64,000 bases of DNA from Hyaloraphidium curvatum SAG 235-1 (lineage: Eukaryota; Fungi; Monoblepharomycota), in assembly GCA_025558095.1 (NCBI GenBank), contig JAIVFI010000008.1, positions 248,001 through 312,000 on the forward strand. The letters run 5' to 3'. The notes beneath the pieces were generated by a model, which searched no databases, was not told where the DNA came from, and saw only the letters and a program-made list of their open reading frames with translations. This document shows, one piece after another, positions 50,491-62,696 of the stretch (within the stretch, counting starts at the first letter, position 1; the number at the start of each line of letters is the position of its first letter). The position numbers were made by a program, and so were the translations under genes.

Positions 50491-51749
50491 TCAGTGGTGC
50501 TTCGCATGCTTCCCGATGAGCCCGATGGGCAGCACCAGCCTTCCCCACGTCTCGTTGATGAGCACCGCCGTCCCTGTGTAGATGCCCACGACCCCGAGCG
50601 CCTGAACGGCAAGCGATCAGCGAAGGGCAAGTCCGCCGCCGCCGCGGGACCCACGATGGAAAACACGCCCGAGAGGATGGTGCACACGTTGCTCCAGTGC
50701 CCGACGGCGGTGAAGATGAAGCTCAGCGCCGCGAAGCCTGCCGGGAACAACCTCCGGTCAGGCGCGATCGGCCGCGGGCGGGGCACCTCGCAGGACCCAC
50801 CAAAGATGCCCATGAGCGCCAGCGAGTGCTTCGTGGTGACGACGAAGATGCCCGCGGCGATGGAGCCCCAGGTGAGGAAGCTGATGAAGAAGACCCACTT
50901 GGACTCGGCGACGAGGGCGGCGGGGACGATGCCGACGATGATCTCGATGTAGAAGAGGCCCAGTCCGATCCAGAAGAATCCGAAGGTGGTGAACGCTGTA
51001 AGGAGATCCCGGGGTCAGATGGCGCCAGGCTTGACCGCAATTACAACCACTTGTCCCCGCAAACGTCTGACCGCGCCAGAGCTCGAAAGCACCGGCAACG
51101 ACCTGCGCGATTCCGCCGTGCACCAGGGCCCCTGGCGACACGTCAGTCGGCCCGGCCCGTGGGCCCGAAGACAGATCACGGCGATCGACGCCTACAGTTC
51201 ATCGCAAGCATGATGAAGCCAGCGTTGGGCTGGATCCCGATGTTCTGTGAGGAGGTAACGTCGATCGATGCCCGACCCGGATGGAGTGCTCCGCTAACGA
51301 TGAACCCGAACAGGATCGCCGTCACCGAGAATGCGTACAGCCCGAACGGGCTCGGATTCCCGATCGCCGGGCTCCAATCCGTCACGGCGACCTTGCGCAG
51401 CGCCTCGGGGTCGTACCCGAACGCCTCGGGCCCGCGCTCGACGAACGGGAACTTGGACGCGCGGCGGGCGAACGAGGCCTGCGGGGTCAGCGCAGAGGGG
51501 GAGGGGAGGTTCTCGTTGGCGCGGTGGAAGGGGGCGGCGTCGATGGTGACAGCCGAGCCGCCTCGGGGGCGGCCGTCGGCGGGGGCGTGGCTCTCCGGGT
51601 TGAAGACCTGGAGATGGAGGCCCGCAGATCAGACGCCGCGTCCGCGGCGCGCGAAGCCGGCAACCCACGTCCGCCTGTCCGTGGAGCATCGCTTGGTCCG
51701 TGACTATCGGCTTCACCCCGCCGTCCTCCATCTCGCGCGGTCCGTCCAT
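50491..51749 (-). CDS. GPR1/FUN34/YaaH (Ady2/ATO-type) acetate or ammonia transporter, multi-exon
   Basis: IGNPSPFGLYAF (NPAPLGL-type motif), GIAQVVAGAFELWRGQTF, FTTFGFFW and GIYTGTAVLINETWGR. Confidence 0.85.
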
Positions 51750-52232: not shown

Positions 52233-54013
52233 CTAGAAGCACTTTCTGTGAACGATCGATGGCCCGGCGTCGTCGTACTCCTCTTTCGTGATCCACATCT
52301 GCTGGAACGTCGACAGCGATGCCAGGATGGAGCCACCTGCAGGATCCGGAATCTGAGAAGGCGCTCTCCTCTGCAGTGAGCCCGACGCACCAATCCAAAC
52401 GGAGTACTTGCGCTCCGGCGGGGCGACGATCTTGACCATCATGGTCTGCGGCGCCAGCTGCGAGACCTCATAATGCAGGCGCTCTGCGATACCCTCAAAC
52501 ACTGCGTGGGAGAAGAGTTCAGCATCGGGGGGTAACAGCGGCAGAGACCGACCCACTTGTGGTGCCACCCGCCAGGACAATGTTGCCCCAGAGCTCCTTC
52601 CTGATGTCCACGTCGCACTTCACGATGCTGTCGTGGATCATCTGGTGAATGCCAGGTTGTTCCGTTCCGATCAAACTGGGCTGGAAGAGGGCCTGGAGCG
52701 ATCACGACGGGCAGAATGCTAGGACAGAATCGCAGCTCCGATCGACGGCTGGAACACACCTCCGGCGCGCGGAAGCGCTCGTTGCCGACCGTTATCATCT
52801 GGCCGTCGGGAAGCTCGTATTGTTTCTCTACCGCGCTGGAGTCTTGGGTATCCAACAGTTCTTTGGCGAAGTCTGCGCGCGGGTTTCCAATCAGCCCGAT
52901 TCAGGGAGCTCCAAAGGGCACGATTTGCTCACCGAATGCCACGTAGCCAAGCTTCTCCTTTATGTCCCTCACGATCTCGCGCTCGGCGGTGGTCGTGAAG
53001 GAATACCCGCGTTCAACGAGCAGCTTCATCATGTAGTCCGTAAGGTCCCTTCCGGCCAAATCCAGTCTCGTTATAGCGTGGGGCACCGCGTAGCCTTCGT
53101 AGACGGGTATGACGTGCGTCACGCCTTCGCCGGAATCGAGGACGACGCCTTGGAAGGAGGTCGGTGTCGCTCATGGGCAACACATCACGGAGAGGGGAAC
53201 CTACCGGTGTTTCGACCCGAAGCGTACAGGGCCAGCACCCCTTGAATTGCGACGTACATCTCTGCCGGAGAAGGAACGTGAGTCAGGATCTGCGGACGTG
53301 CAGTGCGGTTGGTGCCCTTACGGGGATGGTTGAATGTCTCGAAGGATATTTGGGTGAGCCTTTCCCGGTTCGCCTTTGGGTTCAACGGAGCTTCCGCTGC
53401 CCGGAAGCGGAATGTTAGCGACTCCGGATTATGGGATAGGGGCCGGACCAACTCAAAAGGATCGGATGCTCCTCAGGAGCGATACGGAGCTCGTTGTAGA
53501 ATGTGTGATGCTACCGCAAGGCAATCAGCATGTCGTGGGAGTGCGGACGGCGCAGATACGTGCCAGGATCTTGTCCATGTCGTCCCAATTGGTGACAATG
53601 CCGTGTTCAATCGGGTATTTGAGAACCAGGAGGCCTCTCTTGGCAACAGCTTCGTCCCCGACGTAGGCATCTTTGGTTCCCATGCCGACCATGACGCCCT
53701 GGCGTGCGGAAACCGCGCGATTGTCCGGTTGTTCGTCAGAAGCAAGCGATGGCCCCCTGCGTCGCCGGGGCACGCAGGGTCCACGCACCTGATTCCTCGG
53801 GCGTCCGACGATGCTCGGGAACACGGCGCGCGGGGCATCCTCGCCGGCGAAGCCCGCCTTGATCATGCCGCTGCCAATGTCGATGACGATGGGCTGGATT
53901 CCTTCCCCCTCCTGGCCGCGCGCGCCGGAGATGGCGGCCAGCGCTCCGGCGGCGAGCGCGGCGGCGCGGGCGATGCGGGCGACGCGGGAGTGGCGCTGGT
54001 GACGGCGTGCCAT
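52233..54013 (-). CDS. Divergent conventional-type actin with an N-terminal signal-peptide-like extension, multi-exon
   Basis: [95 protein letters not shown] and IVHRKCF. Confidence 0.95.
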
Positions 54014-54156
54014 CGCGAATGCAGGAGTCGGGGCCGGTATGGGACACGCCTGACGCAGTGGGCCCTGAGCCCGCCAGCCATGCAGGGAGACCTGTCCCCA
54101 GTCCACAGGTTAATCGCACCCCCGCGAACTGCCGTAATCGGCCTTCGGGCAGCGCG

Positions 54157-57057
54157 ATGGCTGGCCGCTACGCCGCGCTGGCCTGCGCGGTGCTCGCCGG
54201 TCTCGCCGCCGCCGCGGAAGCCGCGCGGTGGACGAACATCGCCGTCGCGGGCGTGCCCCCTTCCGACAATCTGGTGGGCCCCTCCCCTGCCCTGTGCCGG
54301 CCCGGATCTGACGTGCGCTCAGGTGGATATTGCATTCAACCCGGCAAACAAGTTATTCCTCGCCGCCGGCCTCCTCGGCAACATCTACGGTTTCTCAGGC
54401 GCTTCCAGGGCCGCGGCAGGGACGCGCAATGGCACCTTTTCCCTGCAGCTGGACACGGACTACAATATCTCGAGCATCGTGAGAATCACGCGTCGTTACG
54501 GCTGCGGAGCAAAGTGGGCTCATTCCCGATCCCAGAGCTGCCCGGTCGCGGGGCAGTGCATCGCCGCCGGAGCAGGCCGGCCCATCTCAACGTGGCAAGC
54601 CGCGGGATGGTCGATCAGGCAGGCGCTTGCGGTGCCAAGGACGTTTACGTTTTCGTACATTGATTGTGTGGACGCCACCTTCTGCGTGGCGGTCGGCGCC
54701 GACGCCGCGCTGGCCGATGAGACCGGCAAAACCGGAGGTGCGTTGTGGTCACGGGCGCGCCGTAGCTCCACTGATCGTTACCGTGCTATGCAGGCCTGAT
54801 CTTCGTGAGAAGGAACGGAACATGGATTCTCTCTCAAGCTTCGATCCCCGCCATGATCGACGTCACTTGCTCCTCCCGCACCGACTGCACGGCCGTCGGC
54901 GACCTGTCCACCGTTTTGGCATTCAACGGCACCAAGTGGAACCGCATCGTTTTCCCGAATGCCACCTCGGATCCTTTCAAGGTCGTGCAGGTCGTTGGAG
55001 ACACCACGTTCATTTTCCGGACCGAGAGCGCCGCAGACGGCGGCACCGTCGCTCGCATTTACTACTACAGCAAGTCTCGCGGGACCTTCGACATGGTGCC
55101 GCCGTCCGTCCTTTCGGGGGTTTCGGATCTCATCAACATCAACTGCCCGACGAAAACCGACTGCATTGCTCTCGGCCTCGACAGTGACGCTTACGGCAAC
55201 GTCATCTGCCGCTGGAAGGGGCCCTCACCTACGGGCTGGACCAGAGGTGGATCGTGAGGCAGTCTGGCGCATCCAGCAACTGACCCACATCGCCCCGTGC
55301 AGATTCGGTGAATGCGACCATCATCAAGGGCATCTTCAACGCCGTGGAGTGCTCGACGCCGTGCGAGAGGAGCATTTCGGACAGATGCTGCCAGTGCGTC
55401 GCCGTTGGCGAACACGGCGTCGCTGCTGTGACCAGACCTACGCTGGTGAGCGGAACCGTTCCACGTTCGTCCTTCCATGCATCAACCCTGCCCTCCCAGG
55501 CCAGGACCTGCCTTTCGAGCAAACCGGACCCCAAGGCGCAGAGGATCCGCAGCGGTCAGCCGTCCGTCACGACCCCGTTCAAGCCCGAGGTTTTCCTCGC
55601 CAAGCAGGCCCTCGACGCGTCCAAGGTACTTGTGCTGGACCTCGGATCGACCACCGTGCGCGCCGGTTACGCCGGAGACGGCACGCCGCAGTTCAGCTTC
55701 CCGAACGTCTACGTGACGCTAGCCAACGGGACGACCCTGGTGGGCCAGCCGGCGGTCGACTTCCGCAGGCCTACCAAAGCCCCGATCGTCAACGGCATTC
55801 TTTCGGACACGTGAGTCGAGAACGGATGCGCGATCTTGCCGCACCGCTGATCCGCGCATCCCAGGCCCGGCCTCGTCCTCGTGATAAAGTACGCGCTCGG
55901 CCTCCTCGGCGTCCGCAACACGGCCCAGGTCGCCAACAAGCTCATCCTTCTGGTCTCGCCACTCAATACCATGGCGGTGCGCACGGCCTTTTCTGCCAGG
56001 ATCATGACCGAGTTCTCCCCCGCGGCGCTCTGGGTGGGCCAGCCCGCGCTCGTGGAGCCGTTCATCACGGGATCGGGTGCGTCTTTGCTCGTCTTCCGTG
56101 ATCGGCTATTGGCTCATCATCGGCTCGGATGTGCAGTCTCGGACGGGACCCAGGCCCTCTCATTGGATTTCGGACAGACCGCGACCGCCGTTCCTGTCTT
56201 CAAGGACAACGGCAACATCTTCACCTACCTGTCCGCGATCAGGACCACTACGCTCGTCGCCACGAACCTGGACGCCTACATCGCCCGCCAGCTCCGCATC
56301 ACCACCACTCAGGCTGCCGAGCTCAAGCAGGCCCGCAACGTGTTCTTTGCTTCCGTCCCCGACGCCGGCGCATCCAGGGGCAGAACGCCGCCCATCGGCT
56401 TCAGGCTCGCCAACGGCACCAACGTCACCGTCCCCGGCGACCTGAGGTGGACGATCCCGGAGGCGATCTTCAGGCCCGGCATCATCGGCGTCAGGGGACC
56501 CGGGTTCGCCGCCATCGCAGCCGCGGCCGTGGCTGCCTCCCCCCAGTCCTACAGGGCCGGGGCCGTGTCCATGAAAATCGTCGTCGCGGGCGGATCCACC
56601 CTGTTCAGGTCGTTCGGCGACCGGCTGCGCATCGAGATCGGCAAGCTGTCGCCTTGGAACATGGTCAGGGGGAACATCGACAACACCCAGGCGCTCCACA
56701 ACTTCACCAACATCTTGATGGCCCCCGGCAGGATCGGTGCCGCGTTCAGGGGCGCCAGCGGGCTAGGCGGTGGGTTGCCGGTTGCCCACCACCGATCGTT
56801 TCCGGCACCCTCGATCTCATCCCTGCCGGCAGCTGCCCCTGCTGCCGACGGACCCGACTACGTGTTCCCGGCAAACTTCAGCGCATCCGGCGCGGCGGCC
56901 TTTGGGAGTGGGTGCCTGCCGCCCGCGGTGTCGCGCTGTCTGATCTCACACCGACTTGCCAGCCGTGTGCCTGCCGCCCAACTCGGCGATCTGCGCGTGC
57001 GACAATGCGCAGGCCTCGCCATGCAGCGTTTCCGGGAGTGCGTGCGTGTGCACCTGA
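54157..57057 (+). CDS. Secreted multidomain protein: signal peptide, Cys-repeat beta-propeller-like region, divergent actin-fold domain and Cys-rich tail; multi-exon
   Basis: Leader MAGRYAALACAVLAGLAAAAEA; five C..CxAxG repeats; actin motifs VLDLGSTTVRAGYAGD, PIVNGI, LDFGQTATAVPV, IPEAIFRP, IVVAGGSTLFRSFGDRL and AFRGAS; last exon TVCLPPNSAICACDNAQASPCSVSGSACVCT*. Confidence 0.85.
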
Positions 57058-57318: not shown

Positions 57319-58532
57319 TCACTCGCCCCGCTGCCTCTTGATCTTGACCTTCTCCTCCTCCTGCGGCACCACCGCCTCGGCCGGCTGCTGCAACAGCACC
57401 AGCTGCTGCCCGCCGTAGCCCTCCCCCCCGACCATGACGAACTGCCCCAGCCCGCCCAGCCCCTGCACGCCGGGCGACGACAGGGCGTAGAACAGCTGCC
57501 CGTTGGCGCCCTGAACGAGGTACGGCATCGACACGGCCTGGGGCTGCTGCTGCTGGCTGGGGAAGGTGTAGACGGGGGAGTAGTTGAGCGGGGGGGTGTA
57601 GGGGTCGCCGCCGTGCAGGAGCGGGGTGGCCGTGGCGGCAGGTGGCGGGGTGGGGGGCTTGCTGGCCGGTTCCGTCGGGGGGGTGGAGACGGCGGGCGGG
57701 GTGGCGGCGGGGGAGGGCTTGGCGGAGCGGCGCGGCTTGCGCGGCGCGGAGGGAGCCGCGGCCGGCTTGGGCGGCGGCGGGGCAGGCGCGGGTTCGGGGT
57801 CCTCGGGGGGGCCGGCGGCGCCGGACTCGTCGTCCAGCTCCGAGGGGTCCGAGTTGAGGCACGCCTGGATCAGGTTCTTGCCCTGCTCGCGGGTGATGAT
57901 GGGCTGGAGCTTGGGCGTGGCAAATGTGTAGACATGGCCCGTTTCAGAGGCCACCAGCAGCAGGACCTGCGTGCCCGTGAGGGTTGAGAGCTCGTAGGCC
58001 TGGAAGGCGGCGGCAATGACGGGCGAAAAGGAGGCAAGGAGCGTTAGATGCCATTTCAGAAATGAAAAAGGCCTGGCGACGGCCAGCGACCAGGGAGGGG
58101 TGAATCGACCGAGGGCGGTCGGGCTCGCCGCAGCTGTGCCCTCCCGGTGCGGCACCCATCCGCTGCAGCCCGTCCTTTGGCCGCGGTATGCCTCTCCGAC
58201 CCGTTTTCCGCCACCCGGGACCCGAGTCCGACGACGCACCTTCTTCATGATCCCGGCCTTGCGCTTCGAGAAGGTGATGTGCCTGCGGCTCTTGTCGTGG
58301 ATGTACTCGATCTTTATCTTGCGCCTGCCCTGCCTGGCGGGCTTGCCGCCGCCGTCGTCGCCGTCGGACGAGCCCATGTCGTCGTCATCGTCGGCAGCTG
58401 GGCGGGGGTGGGGGTCAGGTGGGCGGGGCTGCCGGCGGCGGGTGGCCCACGTCTGCCGTTCTGCGCGGCGGCGAGCATCTGGTGCGAGAGGTGCGCGATG
58501 TCCTGCGGCTGCAGCAGCGCCTGCTTGCTCAT
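57319..58532 (-). CDS. MCM1: SRF-type MADS-box transcription factor
   Basis: GRRKIKIEYIHDKSRRHITFSKRKAGIMKK|AYELSTLTGTQVLLLVASETGHVYTFATPKLQP. Confidence 0.93.
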
Positions 58533-59380
58533 CGTCTGCGGCGGCCGTCAGCGGATGGCCGGAGGGGCCGCGCCACGCTCGACGGCAGGCGGCGGCGGGC
58601 GCCCGGACGACGCCCGCGCGCCCGGGGCCGCGACGCACCTCGCGCTGGGGGCACCACGGGTGGTTGCGCGGGCCCAATGGGACCGGAGTTCCACGCTCTC
58701 CGAAAGGGAAAAGGCTCGCTCGCTCGCTAAGGAAACGGGGCTGGGGTGAAGGTGGTTGTGAGGCTGAAAACGATGAAAAGGGAAGGAGGTCGCCCCCACA
58801 CACTGCCCCGCCCCAGCAGGGACCTCTCATGGCCTCCAAACACCGGGGAGAAGGGCTCAATCTGCTTTTATCCGTTTGGATCTCTTGAATATGTGGTGGA
58901 GGCGGTTGACGCCGTCAGGGGCGGCCGCGAGGGGCGGCCGCGAGCCGACGGGTTCATCACTACCACCGAAACCGAGGCGCGCAACGCCAAACGTGTTTCA
59001 AATGGCCTGCAATCGATGGCACCTGGTGCCATTTGGCCTGATGGCCCTTCTTTGGACGTCCAGAGGTGAGTTTCGAGTCGGCCGATATCCAGGTGCCCGG
59101 AAGAGCATCCGGGCCGAGTCCATCACCGCACTGTGGGGCCAATCTGCGAATCTTCTCTGCGTCTTTGATCGATTAGCGGTGCCATGGCCAAGTCTCATGA
59201 TACGCCAAGCGCCCGATGCCTTGTCGCGGCACGGCTCAATGAGTTAGCCGCCCGTGCCGAACACCACCGTCTCCCGCTCCGAGCCCCGCTCCTCCCGAGA
59301 CCGGCTCGTTCACGGCCGTTCCAACGCCGTCTCCCGAATTTGCACCCTTCGCCGAGGCCACCGCGCCCCCTCCGCCCGCG

Positions 59381-60401
59381 ATGGCCGCCCCCGCCCCCAA
59401 CTACACCTTCGAGACCCTCCGCACCTCCTTCCCGGCGCCTTTCGTGCTGCACGTCGAGATCAACCGGCCCACGAGCCTGAACGCGTTCAACCCGACGTTC
59501 TGGGCCGAGTGCAAGGCGTGCTTCGAGCGCGTGGCCGACGACCCGGACGTCCGCGCTGTGGTCCTGTCGGGCGGCGACTCGAGGATCTTCACGGCAGGAT
59601 TGGACAGTCGGTCCCCCCTCACCGTCCGCCGAAACCCGCTGACTCGCCCGCCCTCCCAGTCAAGGCCTTCCAGCCCGGCGCCGCCCGCGCCAAGCCCGTC
59701 GACCCCGCGCGGGACGCCTACCGCCGCCTGAAGCACCTCAAGCGGGACATCCAGGACCCCTTCATCGCCATCGAGGAGTGCGACAAGCCCGTCGTCGCGG
59801 CGTGGGTCCGGCCCGGCGTCCGCCGCCCGGGCCGATCGCTCACCCCGCTCCCGCCCCCGTAGCGTGCACTCCACGGTGATCGGCGCCGGCTGCGAGATGA
59901 TCGCCGCGTGCGACATCCGCTACGCCACCGAGGACGCCCGCTTCAGCGTCAAGGAGGTTGACATCGGCATCGCGGCCGACTCGGGCGGCCTGCAGCGCAT
60001 CTCCAAGATCTCGGGCAGCGATTCGTTCGTCCGCGAGATCGTCTTCACCGCGCGCTTCTTCTCGGCGGCCGAGGCCGAGAGGCACGGGTTCGTTTCCAGG
60101 ATCCTGAAGGACAAGGCGGCGTGCGTGGCGGCGGCGGTCGAGACGGCCAAGCTGATCGCGGAGAAGAGCCCCGTGGCGACGCTGGGGAGCAAGCACATGT
60201 GGGTTTCCTGCTGCGTGGCGCTGCCGGGGAGGCGCTGACTCCCGCCCGCTGCGCAGCATGAACTGGAGCAGGGACCGCACCGTGCGCGACGGGCTGCACT
60301 ACACCAACGTGTGGTCGGCCATCTTCCAGCAGACCGAGGACATGGGGAAGGCCGCGCTGGCAAACGCCAAGAAGACCACGGCCGAGTTTGCCAAGCTCTG
60401 A
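59381..60401 (+). CDS. ECH1: Delta(3,5)-Delta(2,4)-dienoyl-CoA isomerase (crotonase family), peroxisomal
   Basis: VEINRP..LNAF, FTAGLD, IEECDKPVVAA, ACDIRY, KEVDIGIAADSGGLQR and KSPVA; ends with PTS1 AKL. Confidence 0.9.
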
Positions 60402-60651
60402 ACTCCCGTTCGGGTGGGACCGCAGGGGGCAGGAGTTGGACGGACGGTCTAGGACGGCGGCATGGATCGCGCAGACGAATGATATTTGATGGCATACTTG
60501 CGGTTCGCGATGCTGTCAAAGGCCGCTCATTTTCCTTCCTCCCGAAATCCTTCCTCCGAAATCCTTCCTCCGCTAATCTACCTCCACCGAGCCGAATCCT
60601 CCGAACCAACCCATCGATCTGTCAGGAACCCTGCCCCGCTCCTCCGTTCCC

Positions 60652-61926
60652 TCAACCCAGCAGCTCCGCCACGGCGCCCTGCACGCCCCCGCTCCCGACC
60701 ATCCGCGCCAGCTCCTCGTCGCTCCTCCCCTGGCCGAGCCCCATCTCGCGGATCTGCGCCACCTGCGCCGCCAGCAGCACGGTCGCCGGCGAGGGGGGGA
60801 AGGCGGCGGCGGGGGGAGGCGGGAAGTGCGGCGGCGGGGGGCCGGGCCAGCCGCGCATCCCGGGGGGCGGGGGAGGGAACTGGTGCGGCGGGGGAGGGAA
60901 GGGGGGGAAGTGGGGAGGGGGAGGGGGGAAGGCGCCCGGCATCGCCGGGGGCTCGGGGCCGGGAGGAGGAGGGGGGCGGCGGGTGCGCGCGGCCATGTCG
61001 CCGATGACGCGGGCGACCTGCTGCGCGACGACGAAGGCCATGGAGAGTGCCGAGGCGCCGACGTTTGCGGCGGTCCCAGGGGCGGGCGGGGTGATGGTGG
61101 GCGTGGTCGGGGTGGTCGGCGGGGCGGCGGCGGGGGCGGCGCCGCGGCGGCGGTCGAGGTCCGCGGCCCATTCCTCGACGCTCTTGCCGATCCTGTCCGC
61201 CAGCTCGTCGATCCCGCCGTTGGCTTGGGCCTGGGGCTGCGGAGCCTGGGCGCGGGCGCCCTGCGTGGTGGCCTGCCAGGCGCCGACGCCCATGCCGGCG
61301 ACGGAGCGCACCACGTCAGCGGCGTTGGCGCCCACGGCGCTGACGACCCTCCTGACGAGCGCCTGCAGCTCGGGGTCCGAGTCCCAGTGCGCGCGCAGGG
61401 TGGCGATCAGGCTGCGGAGCAGGGGGAGGATCGGCTCGGGCGGGGTGCGCTGGTTGGCGGCGGCGGGCGCGGCGGCTGCCTGCGCGGGCTCCTCCGCGTC
61501 GCCGACGGGGAACGAGCCGGGCACGGAGCGCTGCTCCTCGACGTCCATGCAGTCGTCCGCGGGTGCGGCGCGAGCCAGCTCGTCCTCCATGGCGGCTGCG
61601 AGCTCCTCCTCGGTGACGGGCGTGGCGGGCGCCATCTCGCTGCGCGGGCCGTCGGCGGGGTCGGCGCGGGCGGGCAGCAGCGGCGGCACGGCGGGGTACG
61701 CGATGTCGGGCGCGGCGGCGGCGGGGACCAGCACCAGCTTGGCTCCCGCGGCAACGGCGGCGGCGAGCGCGGCGTCGTCGGCCACGGGGGCGCCCTCGGC
61801 GGTCTGCAGCGCGAGATGCACGCCGGGCGGCACGCCGAAGCGGTCGCGCGCCGTGGCGAGGACTTCCAGCAGAGGGGCCGCGGGCAACTTCCGGGTCTGC
61901 CCGGCAAACGCGATCTTGACGGACAT
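60652..61926 (-). CDS. Protein with an N-terminal PB1/ubiquitin-like domain, Pro-rich linker and C-terminal UBA-like domain
   Basis: N-terminal MSVKIAFAGQTRKL; C-terminal QVAQIREMGL..GGVQGAVAELLG. Confidence 0.65.
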   Translation of the reverse strand: MSVKIAFAGQTRKLPAAPLLEVLATARDRFGVPPGVHLALQTAEGAPVADDAALAAAVAAGAKLVLVPAAAAPDIAYPAVPPLLPARADPADGPRSEMAPATPVTEEELAAAMEDELARAAPADDCMDVEEQRSVPGSFPVGDAEEPAQAAAAPAAANQRTPPEPILPLLRSLIATLRAHWDSDPELQALVRRVVSAVGANAADVVRSVAGMGVGAWQATTQGARAQAPQPQAQANGGIDELADRIGKSVEEWAADLDRRRGAAPAAAPPTTPTTPTITPPAPGTAANVGASALSMAFVVAQQVARVIGDMAARTRRPPPPPGPEPPAMPGAFPPPPPHFPPFPPPPHQFPPPPPGMRGWPGPPPPHFPPPPAAAFPPSPATVLLAAQVAQIREMGLGQGRSDEELARMVGSGGVQGAVAELLG

Positions 61927-62191
61927 CGTGGGAGGGCGGGGGTGCGGCGGTCGTTCAGGTCAGGGAGAGGTGTCGCGGGTGTCTCTTGCGTACGCCGAAC
62001 GCGAGAGAACGTCCCGCTTTTGCGTTTCGGGATTGCTGGGGACGTCTTGCGCGTCGCTTGCGTTGCTTGGTCGGGATTCGCCCGCGCTGACCGGTTTCTG
62101 AGAGGTCCTAAAACTCATATTTCCGGGAGCCTCGCAAGCCCGCGAGCGCACCGCATCTCCCTCAGAAACACCGCAAATCACCGCACCTCTC

Positions 62192-62389
62192 ATGTCCGCG
62201 CAGCTGCCCGTGTCGCAGGACCGCGCCGACGAGAAGGACCACCCGCAGATCCGCTCCTCCGACATGCCGGACTCCTCGAAGGTCCCCCCTCCGTACGGCA
62301 CCCGCTCGCACGAAGTGGAATGGTGGCGCTTGGCGTGGGTGCCAGCCGCCGCCGCGGCGTTCGCGGTGGCTTGGGCGGTGCGGAAGTGA
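62192..62389 (+). CDS. Small putative tail-anchored membrane protein; 3' end may be spliced
   Basis: ATG ORF with GC3 bias and a single C-terminal hydrophobic stretch. Confidence 0.4.
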   Translation: MSAQLPVSQDRADEKDHPQIRSSDMPDSSKVPPPYGTRSHEVEWWRLAWVPAAAAAFAVAWAVRK

Positions 62390-62696
62390 GCGCCACGCCG
62401 CTCGGACTTTCCTCGGACTCGTTCTCCGGTGCGGACGGACTCCACTCGGGCCCCTGGAGGCCTCAATGACACTTGCTCCATGCTGGGCAACCGGTCTTTC
62501 TCAGTCCTATGTAGTGCAACTTAGCAGATACAAAATAGTCTCGCAACACTCGATCCGCGCAGTGCTCTTCGCCTCTCTCGTCCGTCGTCCGGTGCCCCTC
62601 CACGCAGCCGCCACACCTCCCCCCACCCTCGGCCCGGGCCAGCACGGTCCCCACGTCCGCCGCCTCGCACCCCGCCAAGGACACAGTTCCGCGGTC

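Follow-up and report, generated by a model that had tools for sequence, protein, structure and literature searches.

Whether an actin can be directed out of the cytosol is the question raised by a locus of Hyaloraphidium curvatum, a walled, non-flagellate freshwater fungus. Actin is a textbook cytosolic and nuclear protein, and to our knowledge no described actin or actin-related protein (Arp) carries a signal peptide. The locus lies in a window of 64,000 nucleotides on contig 8 (JAIVFI010000008.1, 248001–312000) of the 31.9-Mb, 55-contig genome. The window has a GC content of about 67%, and its introns are short (48–90 nt). Positions below are window positions unless another contig is named. 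Two adjacent genes of the actin family, a leader-bearing actin (52233–54013, minus strand) and a propeller-actin fusion (54157–57057, plus strand), are arranged head to head. Their features suggest that actin-type proteins act along the secretory route or extracellularly, which has not been described for actin.

Two leader-bearing actin-family genes diverge from a short gap

The start codon of the actin is at 54013–54011 on the minus strand and that of the fusion at 54157–54159 on the plus strand. They leave a divergent intergenic gap of 143 bp (54014–54156), which presumably holds a shared promoter. A first-pass annotation of this DNA had described two actin-family genes diverging from this gap, one a near-conventional actin and the other a Cys-repeat propeller fused to a divergent actin domain, and had given both a signal-peptide-like leader. 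The start-codon positions agree with the arrangement, Pfam matches, sequence identity and the fold model bear out the nature of the two proteins, and the leaders are supported by n-h-c heuristics, coding composition and shuffles. Within the gap, ATGs lie 5' of both starts, one on the actin side (out of frame, at 54081) and three on the fusion side, so either the 5' untranslated regions (UTRs) are very short or small upstream reading frames are present.

The layout occurs a second time in the genome. On contig 24 (57394–62622; L001:4395–9623), an actin and a fusion gene, both with leaders, lie head to head 579 bp apart. The observation thus holds, and with this second, older pair and a third copy of the fusion it gains strength over the first-pass annotation. 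The four proteins of the contig 8 and contig 24 pairs have the same kind of start, in which the ATG leads into basic residues, then a hydrophobic core and finally a small-x-small site.

A whole-genome scan with Pfam Actin, in which both contig 8 genes were matched, identified about 11 actin/Arp loci. Canonical actins on contigs 1 and 32 have the conventional leaderless N-terminus, with Met and acidic residues before the first strand; the presence of such a separate gene had been proposed as a check on the first-pass annotation. A divergent leaderless actin is on contig 12, and Arp1, Arp2, Arp3, Arp4 and others are also present. Leaders were found only on the contig 8 and contig 24 actins, each of which adjoins one of the three fusion genes.

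The fusion protein has the hallmarks of a secreted glycoprotein

The fusion gene encodes 798 amino acids in ten exons (54157–54273, 54323–54478, 54536–54737, 54794–55246, 55303–55445, 55500–55810, 55865–56076, 56137–56769, 56833–56907 and 56963–57057) and matches the NCBI model DFJ74DRAFT_751279 (P0001) exactly. Its first 22 residues (54157–54222) form a signal-peptide-like start with one basic residue, a 16-residue uncharged core and an A-x-A site. They are followed by about seven propeller-type repeats with paired Cys (54223–55409), a linker with one in-frame 54-nt intron in the mapped NCBI model (55410–55622), a divergent actin-fold domain (55623–56768), and a C-terminal tail with six Cys and the stop codon (56769–57057), which stands in for the last 30 or so residues of actin. 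The stop codon itself (57055–57057) is the point where similarity to the contig 24 paralog ends. A single open frame spans the last propeller repeat and the beginning of the actin fold, which makes the fusion independent of the gene model.

With 11 N-glycosylation sites, the fusion exceeds the expected number of 5.3 (P = 0.011). Ten of these positions are common to the contig 24 paralog, and one site is also retained in a metagenomic relative. Six sites fall in the propeller and linker (residues 23–398), four in the actin fold and one in the tail. The same propeller and linker region contains 15 Cys, the tail six, and the actin fold none. In the contig 24 paralog, the signal features are retained despite a different sequence. 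The excess of sites, the placement of Cys outside the actin fold and the lack of a transmembrane segment are hallmarks of a secreted glycoprotein, and secretion of the fusion protein is likely. A glycosylphosphatidylinositol (GPI) anchor, a transmembrane segment and retention in the endoplasmic reticulum (ER) were also considered. They were rejected, because inspection of the sequence found no C-terminal hydrophobic tail, no internal transmembrane or second strongly hydrophobic segment, and no KDEL/HDEL.

The repeats gave no Pfam match. Their look-alikes in the Atlas are bacterial propellers of the Ycf48/BNR, Rax2 and WD40 types (score 0.91), and a sequence search with the propeller returned one weak match, the bacterial-looking secreted repeat protein P0152 (E = 1.4e-4, 26% identity). 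An AlphaFold2 (AF2) model of the full-length fusion, built from four sequences, was unusable (predicted local distance difference test, pLDDT, 35), and the propeller stretch was nonetheless predicted as beta strands. The model thus gives no structural confirmation of the propeller fold. The tail appears Cys-knot-like.

The actin-fold assignment is more direct. The fusion scores 86.4 bits (E = 2e-24) against Pfam Actin (PF00022; curated cut-off 27 bits). The AF2 model of this domain, from a 62-sequence input alignment that consisted of actins, reached a pLDDT of 88.5 and a predicted template modelling (TM) score of 0.87, and its top Foldseek matches in the PDB are actins (TM 0.80–0.81, root-mean-square deviation 2.6–2.8 Å). 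The alignment shows that this domain has lost the D-loop and carries other residues in place of the catalytic Q137 and of D157, G158 and H161 in the P2-loop, so it lacks the nucleotide site of a catalytically competent actin and is probably neither an ATPase nor a normal filament subunit. A maximum-likelihood tree of 26 actin-family rows, from which Arp2, Arp3, Arp4 and the contig 43 fusion copy were excluded, gave a polytomy with a branch length of 3.5 and did not resolve descent of the fusion fold from the leader-actin lineage.

The partner is a near-conventional actin behind a leader

The leader-bearing actin (52233–54013, minus strand) encodes 409 amino acids. Its structure is a splice model built from sequence in this analysis and comprises ten exons (54013–53789, 53698–53564, 53510–53453, 53396–53322, 53261–53205, 53148–52933, 52872–52760, 52692–52557, 52501–52391 and 52336–52233). 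The nine introns are 53–90 nt long, and all nine positions are common to the contig 24 actin. One of them, predicted intron 2 (53511–53563, minus strand), has a GC-AG donor; it is the sole in-frame solution, and the corresponding intron of the contig 24 paralog has a GT donor. The canonical contig 1 actin (L002:941–1500) is organised differently. It has six codons followed by a 235-nt intron just before the first beta-strand, a 9-nt micro-exon of three codons (G-V-M), and another intron, which interrupts the W86 codon. In the leader actins the 235-nt intron is absent and the W86 intron is shifted by one base.

Pfam Actin matches the exons of the contig 8 actin at 46 and 60 bits, and residues 35–409 are 73–75% identical to conventional actins of yeast, a zygomycete and sea urchin. 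The residues D11, G13–G15, K18, H73, Q137, D154, G156, G158 and H161 are conserved, and the D-loop, hydrophobic plug and C-terminus are all present. The substitutions are N12I, D157E and W86L. The nucleotide-site set (D11, G13–G15, K18, Q137, D154, G156–G158, H161) is complete except for D157E, and nearly all nucleotide-site and filament-contact residues are retained.

Instead of Met and acidic residues before the first strand, the protein starts with a leader of 34 codons (53912–54013, minus strand), which was assessed by charge and hydrophobicity heuristics, coding log-likelihood, shuffles and donor scores. Leaders were judged by our own heuristic measures, namely n-h-c architecture, charge, hydrophobicity, hydrophobic moment and small residues at −3/−1. 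By these measures, an n-h-c architecture with small −3/−1 residues lies within the first 35 or so residues, and the n-region of the contig 8 actin is atypically long and basic. It consists of 16 residues with six basic and no acidic ones (+6), followed by 15 uncharged Ala/Leu/Gly residues and small residues at −3/−1. The acidic, actin-like N-terminus begins right after the leader, and the predicted cleavage would leave such an N-terminus in the leader actins of both contigs.

The contig 24 actin (400 amino acids, 59% identical to the contig 8 actin) has a leader of the textbook signal type, with one basic residue, an 18-residue uncharged core and an A-A-A site. Its nucleotide site is remodelled (N12L, G15S, H73Y, Q137E, D154V, G158Q, K336A). 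Both leader actins contain Cys285 and Cys374 only and have no N-glycosylation site, whereas the conventional actins compared have four to six Cys and a single site at N12, in the phosphate loop. The Cys285/Cys374 pair of actin can form an intramolecular disulfide (PMC7875868). The Cys pattern and the missing N12 site would fit secretion of the leader actins and are no proof of it. Loss of the N12 site was considered as proof and rejected, since many divergent actins without a leader also have another residue at N12; the H. curvatum actin of this kind, on contig 12, retains it.

The layout is old and its genes are constrained

The contig 24 fusion paralog (P0151, 830 amino acids) is 83% identical to the contig 8 fusion. 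Between the two, synonymous divergence (dS) is 0.43, and the ratio of nonsynonymous to synonymous divergence (dN/dS, omega) is 0.18 overall, 0.17 in the actin fold, 0.48 in the signal and 0.056 in the tail, which is the most constrained segment. For the two actins, dS is 1.42 and omega is 0.22. The high dS of the actins and the low omegas indicate that the head-to-head arrangement is old and that both genes are constrained. Two histories would fit, namely an early origin of the pairs with subsequent homogenisation of the fusion copies, or two separate origins of the layout. Under either history, the layout has been kept for long, and all four genes of the pairs are under purifying selection.

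A third fusion paralog, about 45% identical, is on contig 43 (approximately 60186–62443; L012:5187–7444), and has the same 6-Cys tail and a Lys/Thr-rich linker. The gene upstream of this copy resembles a tRNA 2-selenouridine synthase.

Few relatives of the fusion were found. With its actin fold, only five matches at E ≤ 1e-10 were obtained among 1.84 billion representatives. Of these, P0002 and P0004 (about 49% identical) come from neighbouring reading frames of one 2.3-kb metagenome contig. A search with the full-length fusion matched two H. curvatum proteins only, and no relatives of the fusion were found in two metagenome scans. The head-to-head layout was seen twice within the H. curvatum genome (contigs 8 and 24), and in database searches neither gene was found in other species.

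Secretory entry of both partners and the alternatives

We favour a reading in which an old divergent pair encodes two products that would each be routed into the secretory pathway by a cleavable N-terminal signal peptide; ER translocation and leader cleavage are inferred from sequence. One secreted partner would be the near-conventional actin. The other would be the glycosylated, disulfide-rich fusion. Its propeller probably binds a wall or surface glycan, and its actin fold, catalytically dead and without a D-loop, probably attaches to the secreted actin and serves it as an anchor, cap or nucleus. Taken as a whole, that both members of the pair are secretory partners has slightly less than an even chance in our judgement. 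Mutual binding and the site of action, whether the ER/Golgi lumen, the periplasmic space or the wall, are speculative. The first-pass annotation had likewise placed the pair in the secretory pathway or outside the cell. The intact and constrained genes, the leaders, the second pair, the leaderless canonical actins elsewhere and the extracellular hallmarks of the fusion support this in part; the contig 8 actin leader could be a signal peptide or a presequence of the mitochondrial type. The ideas offered there, a filament with a cap or anchor, or decoys, are speculation.

Several points weigh against the favoured reading, most of them given below with the alternative that they favour. Two are general. 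Extracellular ATP is scarce, and neither an ortholog nor a conserved linkage was found outside H. curvatum among the protein representatives and metagenome scans.

The first alternative confines secretion to the fusion. The actin leader would then be an organellar presequence (mitochondrial or other), or it would anchor the protein in a membrane or be inert; the actin would act on the cytosolic or organellar side, and the adjacency would be left from an old duplication. The contig 8 leader is the weakest and least typical of the four. It is Arg-rich without acidic residues, its n-region is amphipathic (hydrophobic moment 0.69, +6), and its moderately hydrophobic core is merely Ala-rich. Because of this long, very basic, amphipathic n-region and Ala-rich core, a mitochondrial presequence is a real alternative for the contig 8 leader, and its type is ambiguous. 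The contig 8 actin also has no N-glycosylation site and a nearly complete ATP site. Moreover, actin needs cytosolic prefoldin and CCT to fold, neither of which is present in the ER lumen, and this dependence favours folding outside the ER. On the other side, the contig 24 actin leader is strongly hydrophobic and canonical, the contig 8 leader (2.18) and the signal peptide of its partner (2.38) have similar core hydrophobicity, both leader actins are without three Cys and N12, and a secreted-type partner adjoins each of them. We consider this alternative unlikely as an account of the pair. Since the leader is atypical and mitochondria-like, and since the CCT dependence of actin argues against folding in the ER, our confidence that the contig 8 actin enters the secretory pathway is modest, at about even or marginally above.

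The second alternative is that both proteins are secretory and independent, the layout reflecting ancestry or a shared promoter and no physical partnership. For the contig 43 fusion paralog, no N-terminal half, leader or actin neighbour was found upstream, and no common motif was found between the 143-bp gap and the 579-bp gap of the contig 24 pair. Both observations are in keeping with independence. In contrast, the layout has been kept since the actin paralogs split, with both genes constrained, and the sole two leader actins of the genome are exactly those that adjoin fusion genes. Independence of the two proteins is, in our view, doubtful.

A third alternative is that the actin leader is an artefact of the gene model, being 5' UTR or intron, and that an ordinary cytosolic actin paralog is encoded. 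This would agree with the 235-nt intron before the first beta-strand of the contig 1 actin, and with a good acceptor (CAG) exactly at the boundary of leader and mature protein in both leader actins (scores 5.5 and 6.6 for contigs 8 and 24). The splice matrices were trained on the 35 introns of the four pair genes, whose donors score 3.3–11.0. For removal of the leader by splicing from an ATG-initiated upstream exon, the best donors reached at most 3.0 on contig 8 and 0.5 on contig 24, and no in-frame Met lies between the boundary acceptor and the P-loop in the leader actins. Because only weak donors are upstream and no in-frame Met precedes the P-loop, the leader-as-intron reading is disfavoured, and the gap available is just 143 bp.

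The composition and periodicity of the leaders are also coding-like. By position-specific composition, the contig 8 actin leader has a coding log-likelihood of +4.5 bits in frame versus −9 and −24 bits out of frame, with a GC content of 0.91 at third codon positions. Across the leaders the values are +4.5, +6.4 and +5.2 bits in frame versus −9 to −24 bits in the other frames, and their GC content is 0.72–0.82 versus 0.51–0.76 for introns. When the leader DNA was shuffled with dinucleotides preserved, the observed hydrophobicity was matched in 1 of 19,797 shuffles for the contig 8 actin and in 0 of 17,102 for the contig 24 actin; relaxed leader criteria were passed by 2% of the stop-free 34-residue stretches in the six frames of the window. 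Since shuffles almost never reach the hydrophobicity of the leaders, these are not a by-product of GC-rich DNA. An artefact of the gene model is thus improbable. That the genes are decaying, functionless duplicates, as the unusual GC-AG intron required by the contig 8 actin and the remodelled nucleotide site of the contig 24 actin might suggest, is very hard to believe with frames and splice sites intact, omegas of 0.18–0.22 and a tail at 0.056.

What a secretory actin pair would mean

If the favoured reading of a secretory pair is true, a near-conventional actin can fold without CCT, and the actin fold has been recruited to an extracellular or luminal space. The pair would then be a natural actin/pseudo-actin pair that could be studied as a minimal anchoring or nucleating module. 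If the leader is mitochondrial instead, the gene would encode a dedicated organellar actin paralog, which would also be new. A more far-reaching idea is a dedicated non-cytosolic actin system, folded without CCT, secreted or luminal, and assembled on a glycan-bound propeller-pseudoactin anchor. We regard it as a rather unlikely extension of the favoured reading. Such a system would build filaments or a scaffold within the periplasmic space or wall, with a possible link to the curved, walled cell form.

Neighbouring genes

Directly downstream of the fusion is a MADS-box gene of the SRF/Mcm1 type (57319–58860, minus strand), whose MADS core closely resembles that of animal SRF. The actin gene is followed downstream, at 51176–51385 on the minus strand, by an exon for a membrane protein of the GPR1/FUN34/YaaH type (acetate transporter-like).

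Comparison with known systems

A literature search found no published description of a signal-peptide actin or of such an actin system, in agreement with the first-pass annotation, which knew of none. The closest relatives are the conventional actins and Arps of PF00022. The contig 8 actin belongs to the same family by profile score and by its identity to conventional actins, and differs in having a hydrophobic leader instead of Met and acidic residues, in N12I, D157E and W86L, and in its two Cys.

Actins or actin-like folds at work outside the cytosol are known in other forms. The wider fold class that actin shares with Hsp70 and sugar kinases can work in the ER/Golgi lumen or outside the cell, as in BiP/Kar2 and the GDA1/CD39 apyrases. 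However, these belong to other families, not PF00022, and form no filaments. An extracellular role has also been proposed for insect actin 5C, an ordinary cytoplasmic actin that is reported to be released by an unconventional, exosome-independent route (PMC4450071). Unlike the contig 8 actin, it is not known to carry a signal peptide or to have a dedicated paralog or partner.

For the fusion, the bacterial secreted Cys-paired propellers (P0152; Ycf48/BNR and Rax2 types) offer a likeness, with two Cys bracketing a strand, then Gly and an aromatic residue, and a signal peptide. The similarity to P0152 is weak, and none of these proteins is fused to an actin fold. Pointed-end nucleators of the Arp2/3 type resemble the fusion by functional analogy only, in that a non-polymerising actin fold could template or anchor a filament. 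They have no sequence relationship to the fusion beyond the family level, and nucleation or binding by the fusion is hypothetical.

Actins with a hydrophobic N-terminal leader were also seen on seemingly full-length mRNAs in Logan transcript contigs (L013, L014 and L015; P0040, P0154 and P0214) of the runs SRR31628435, SRR31628392 and SRR13566442, and P0214 likewise contains Cys285 and Cys374 only. They differ from the H. curvatum actins in coming from unrelated lineages, being either about 45% identical to all actins (P0040 and P0154) or animal-type (P0214), and in resting on unverified assemblies. They may be assembly chimeras, or they may represent a wider undescribed class, in which case these signal-bearing actins hint that secretory actins may have arisen more than once.

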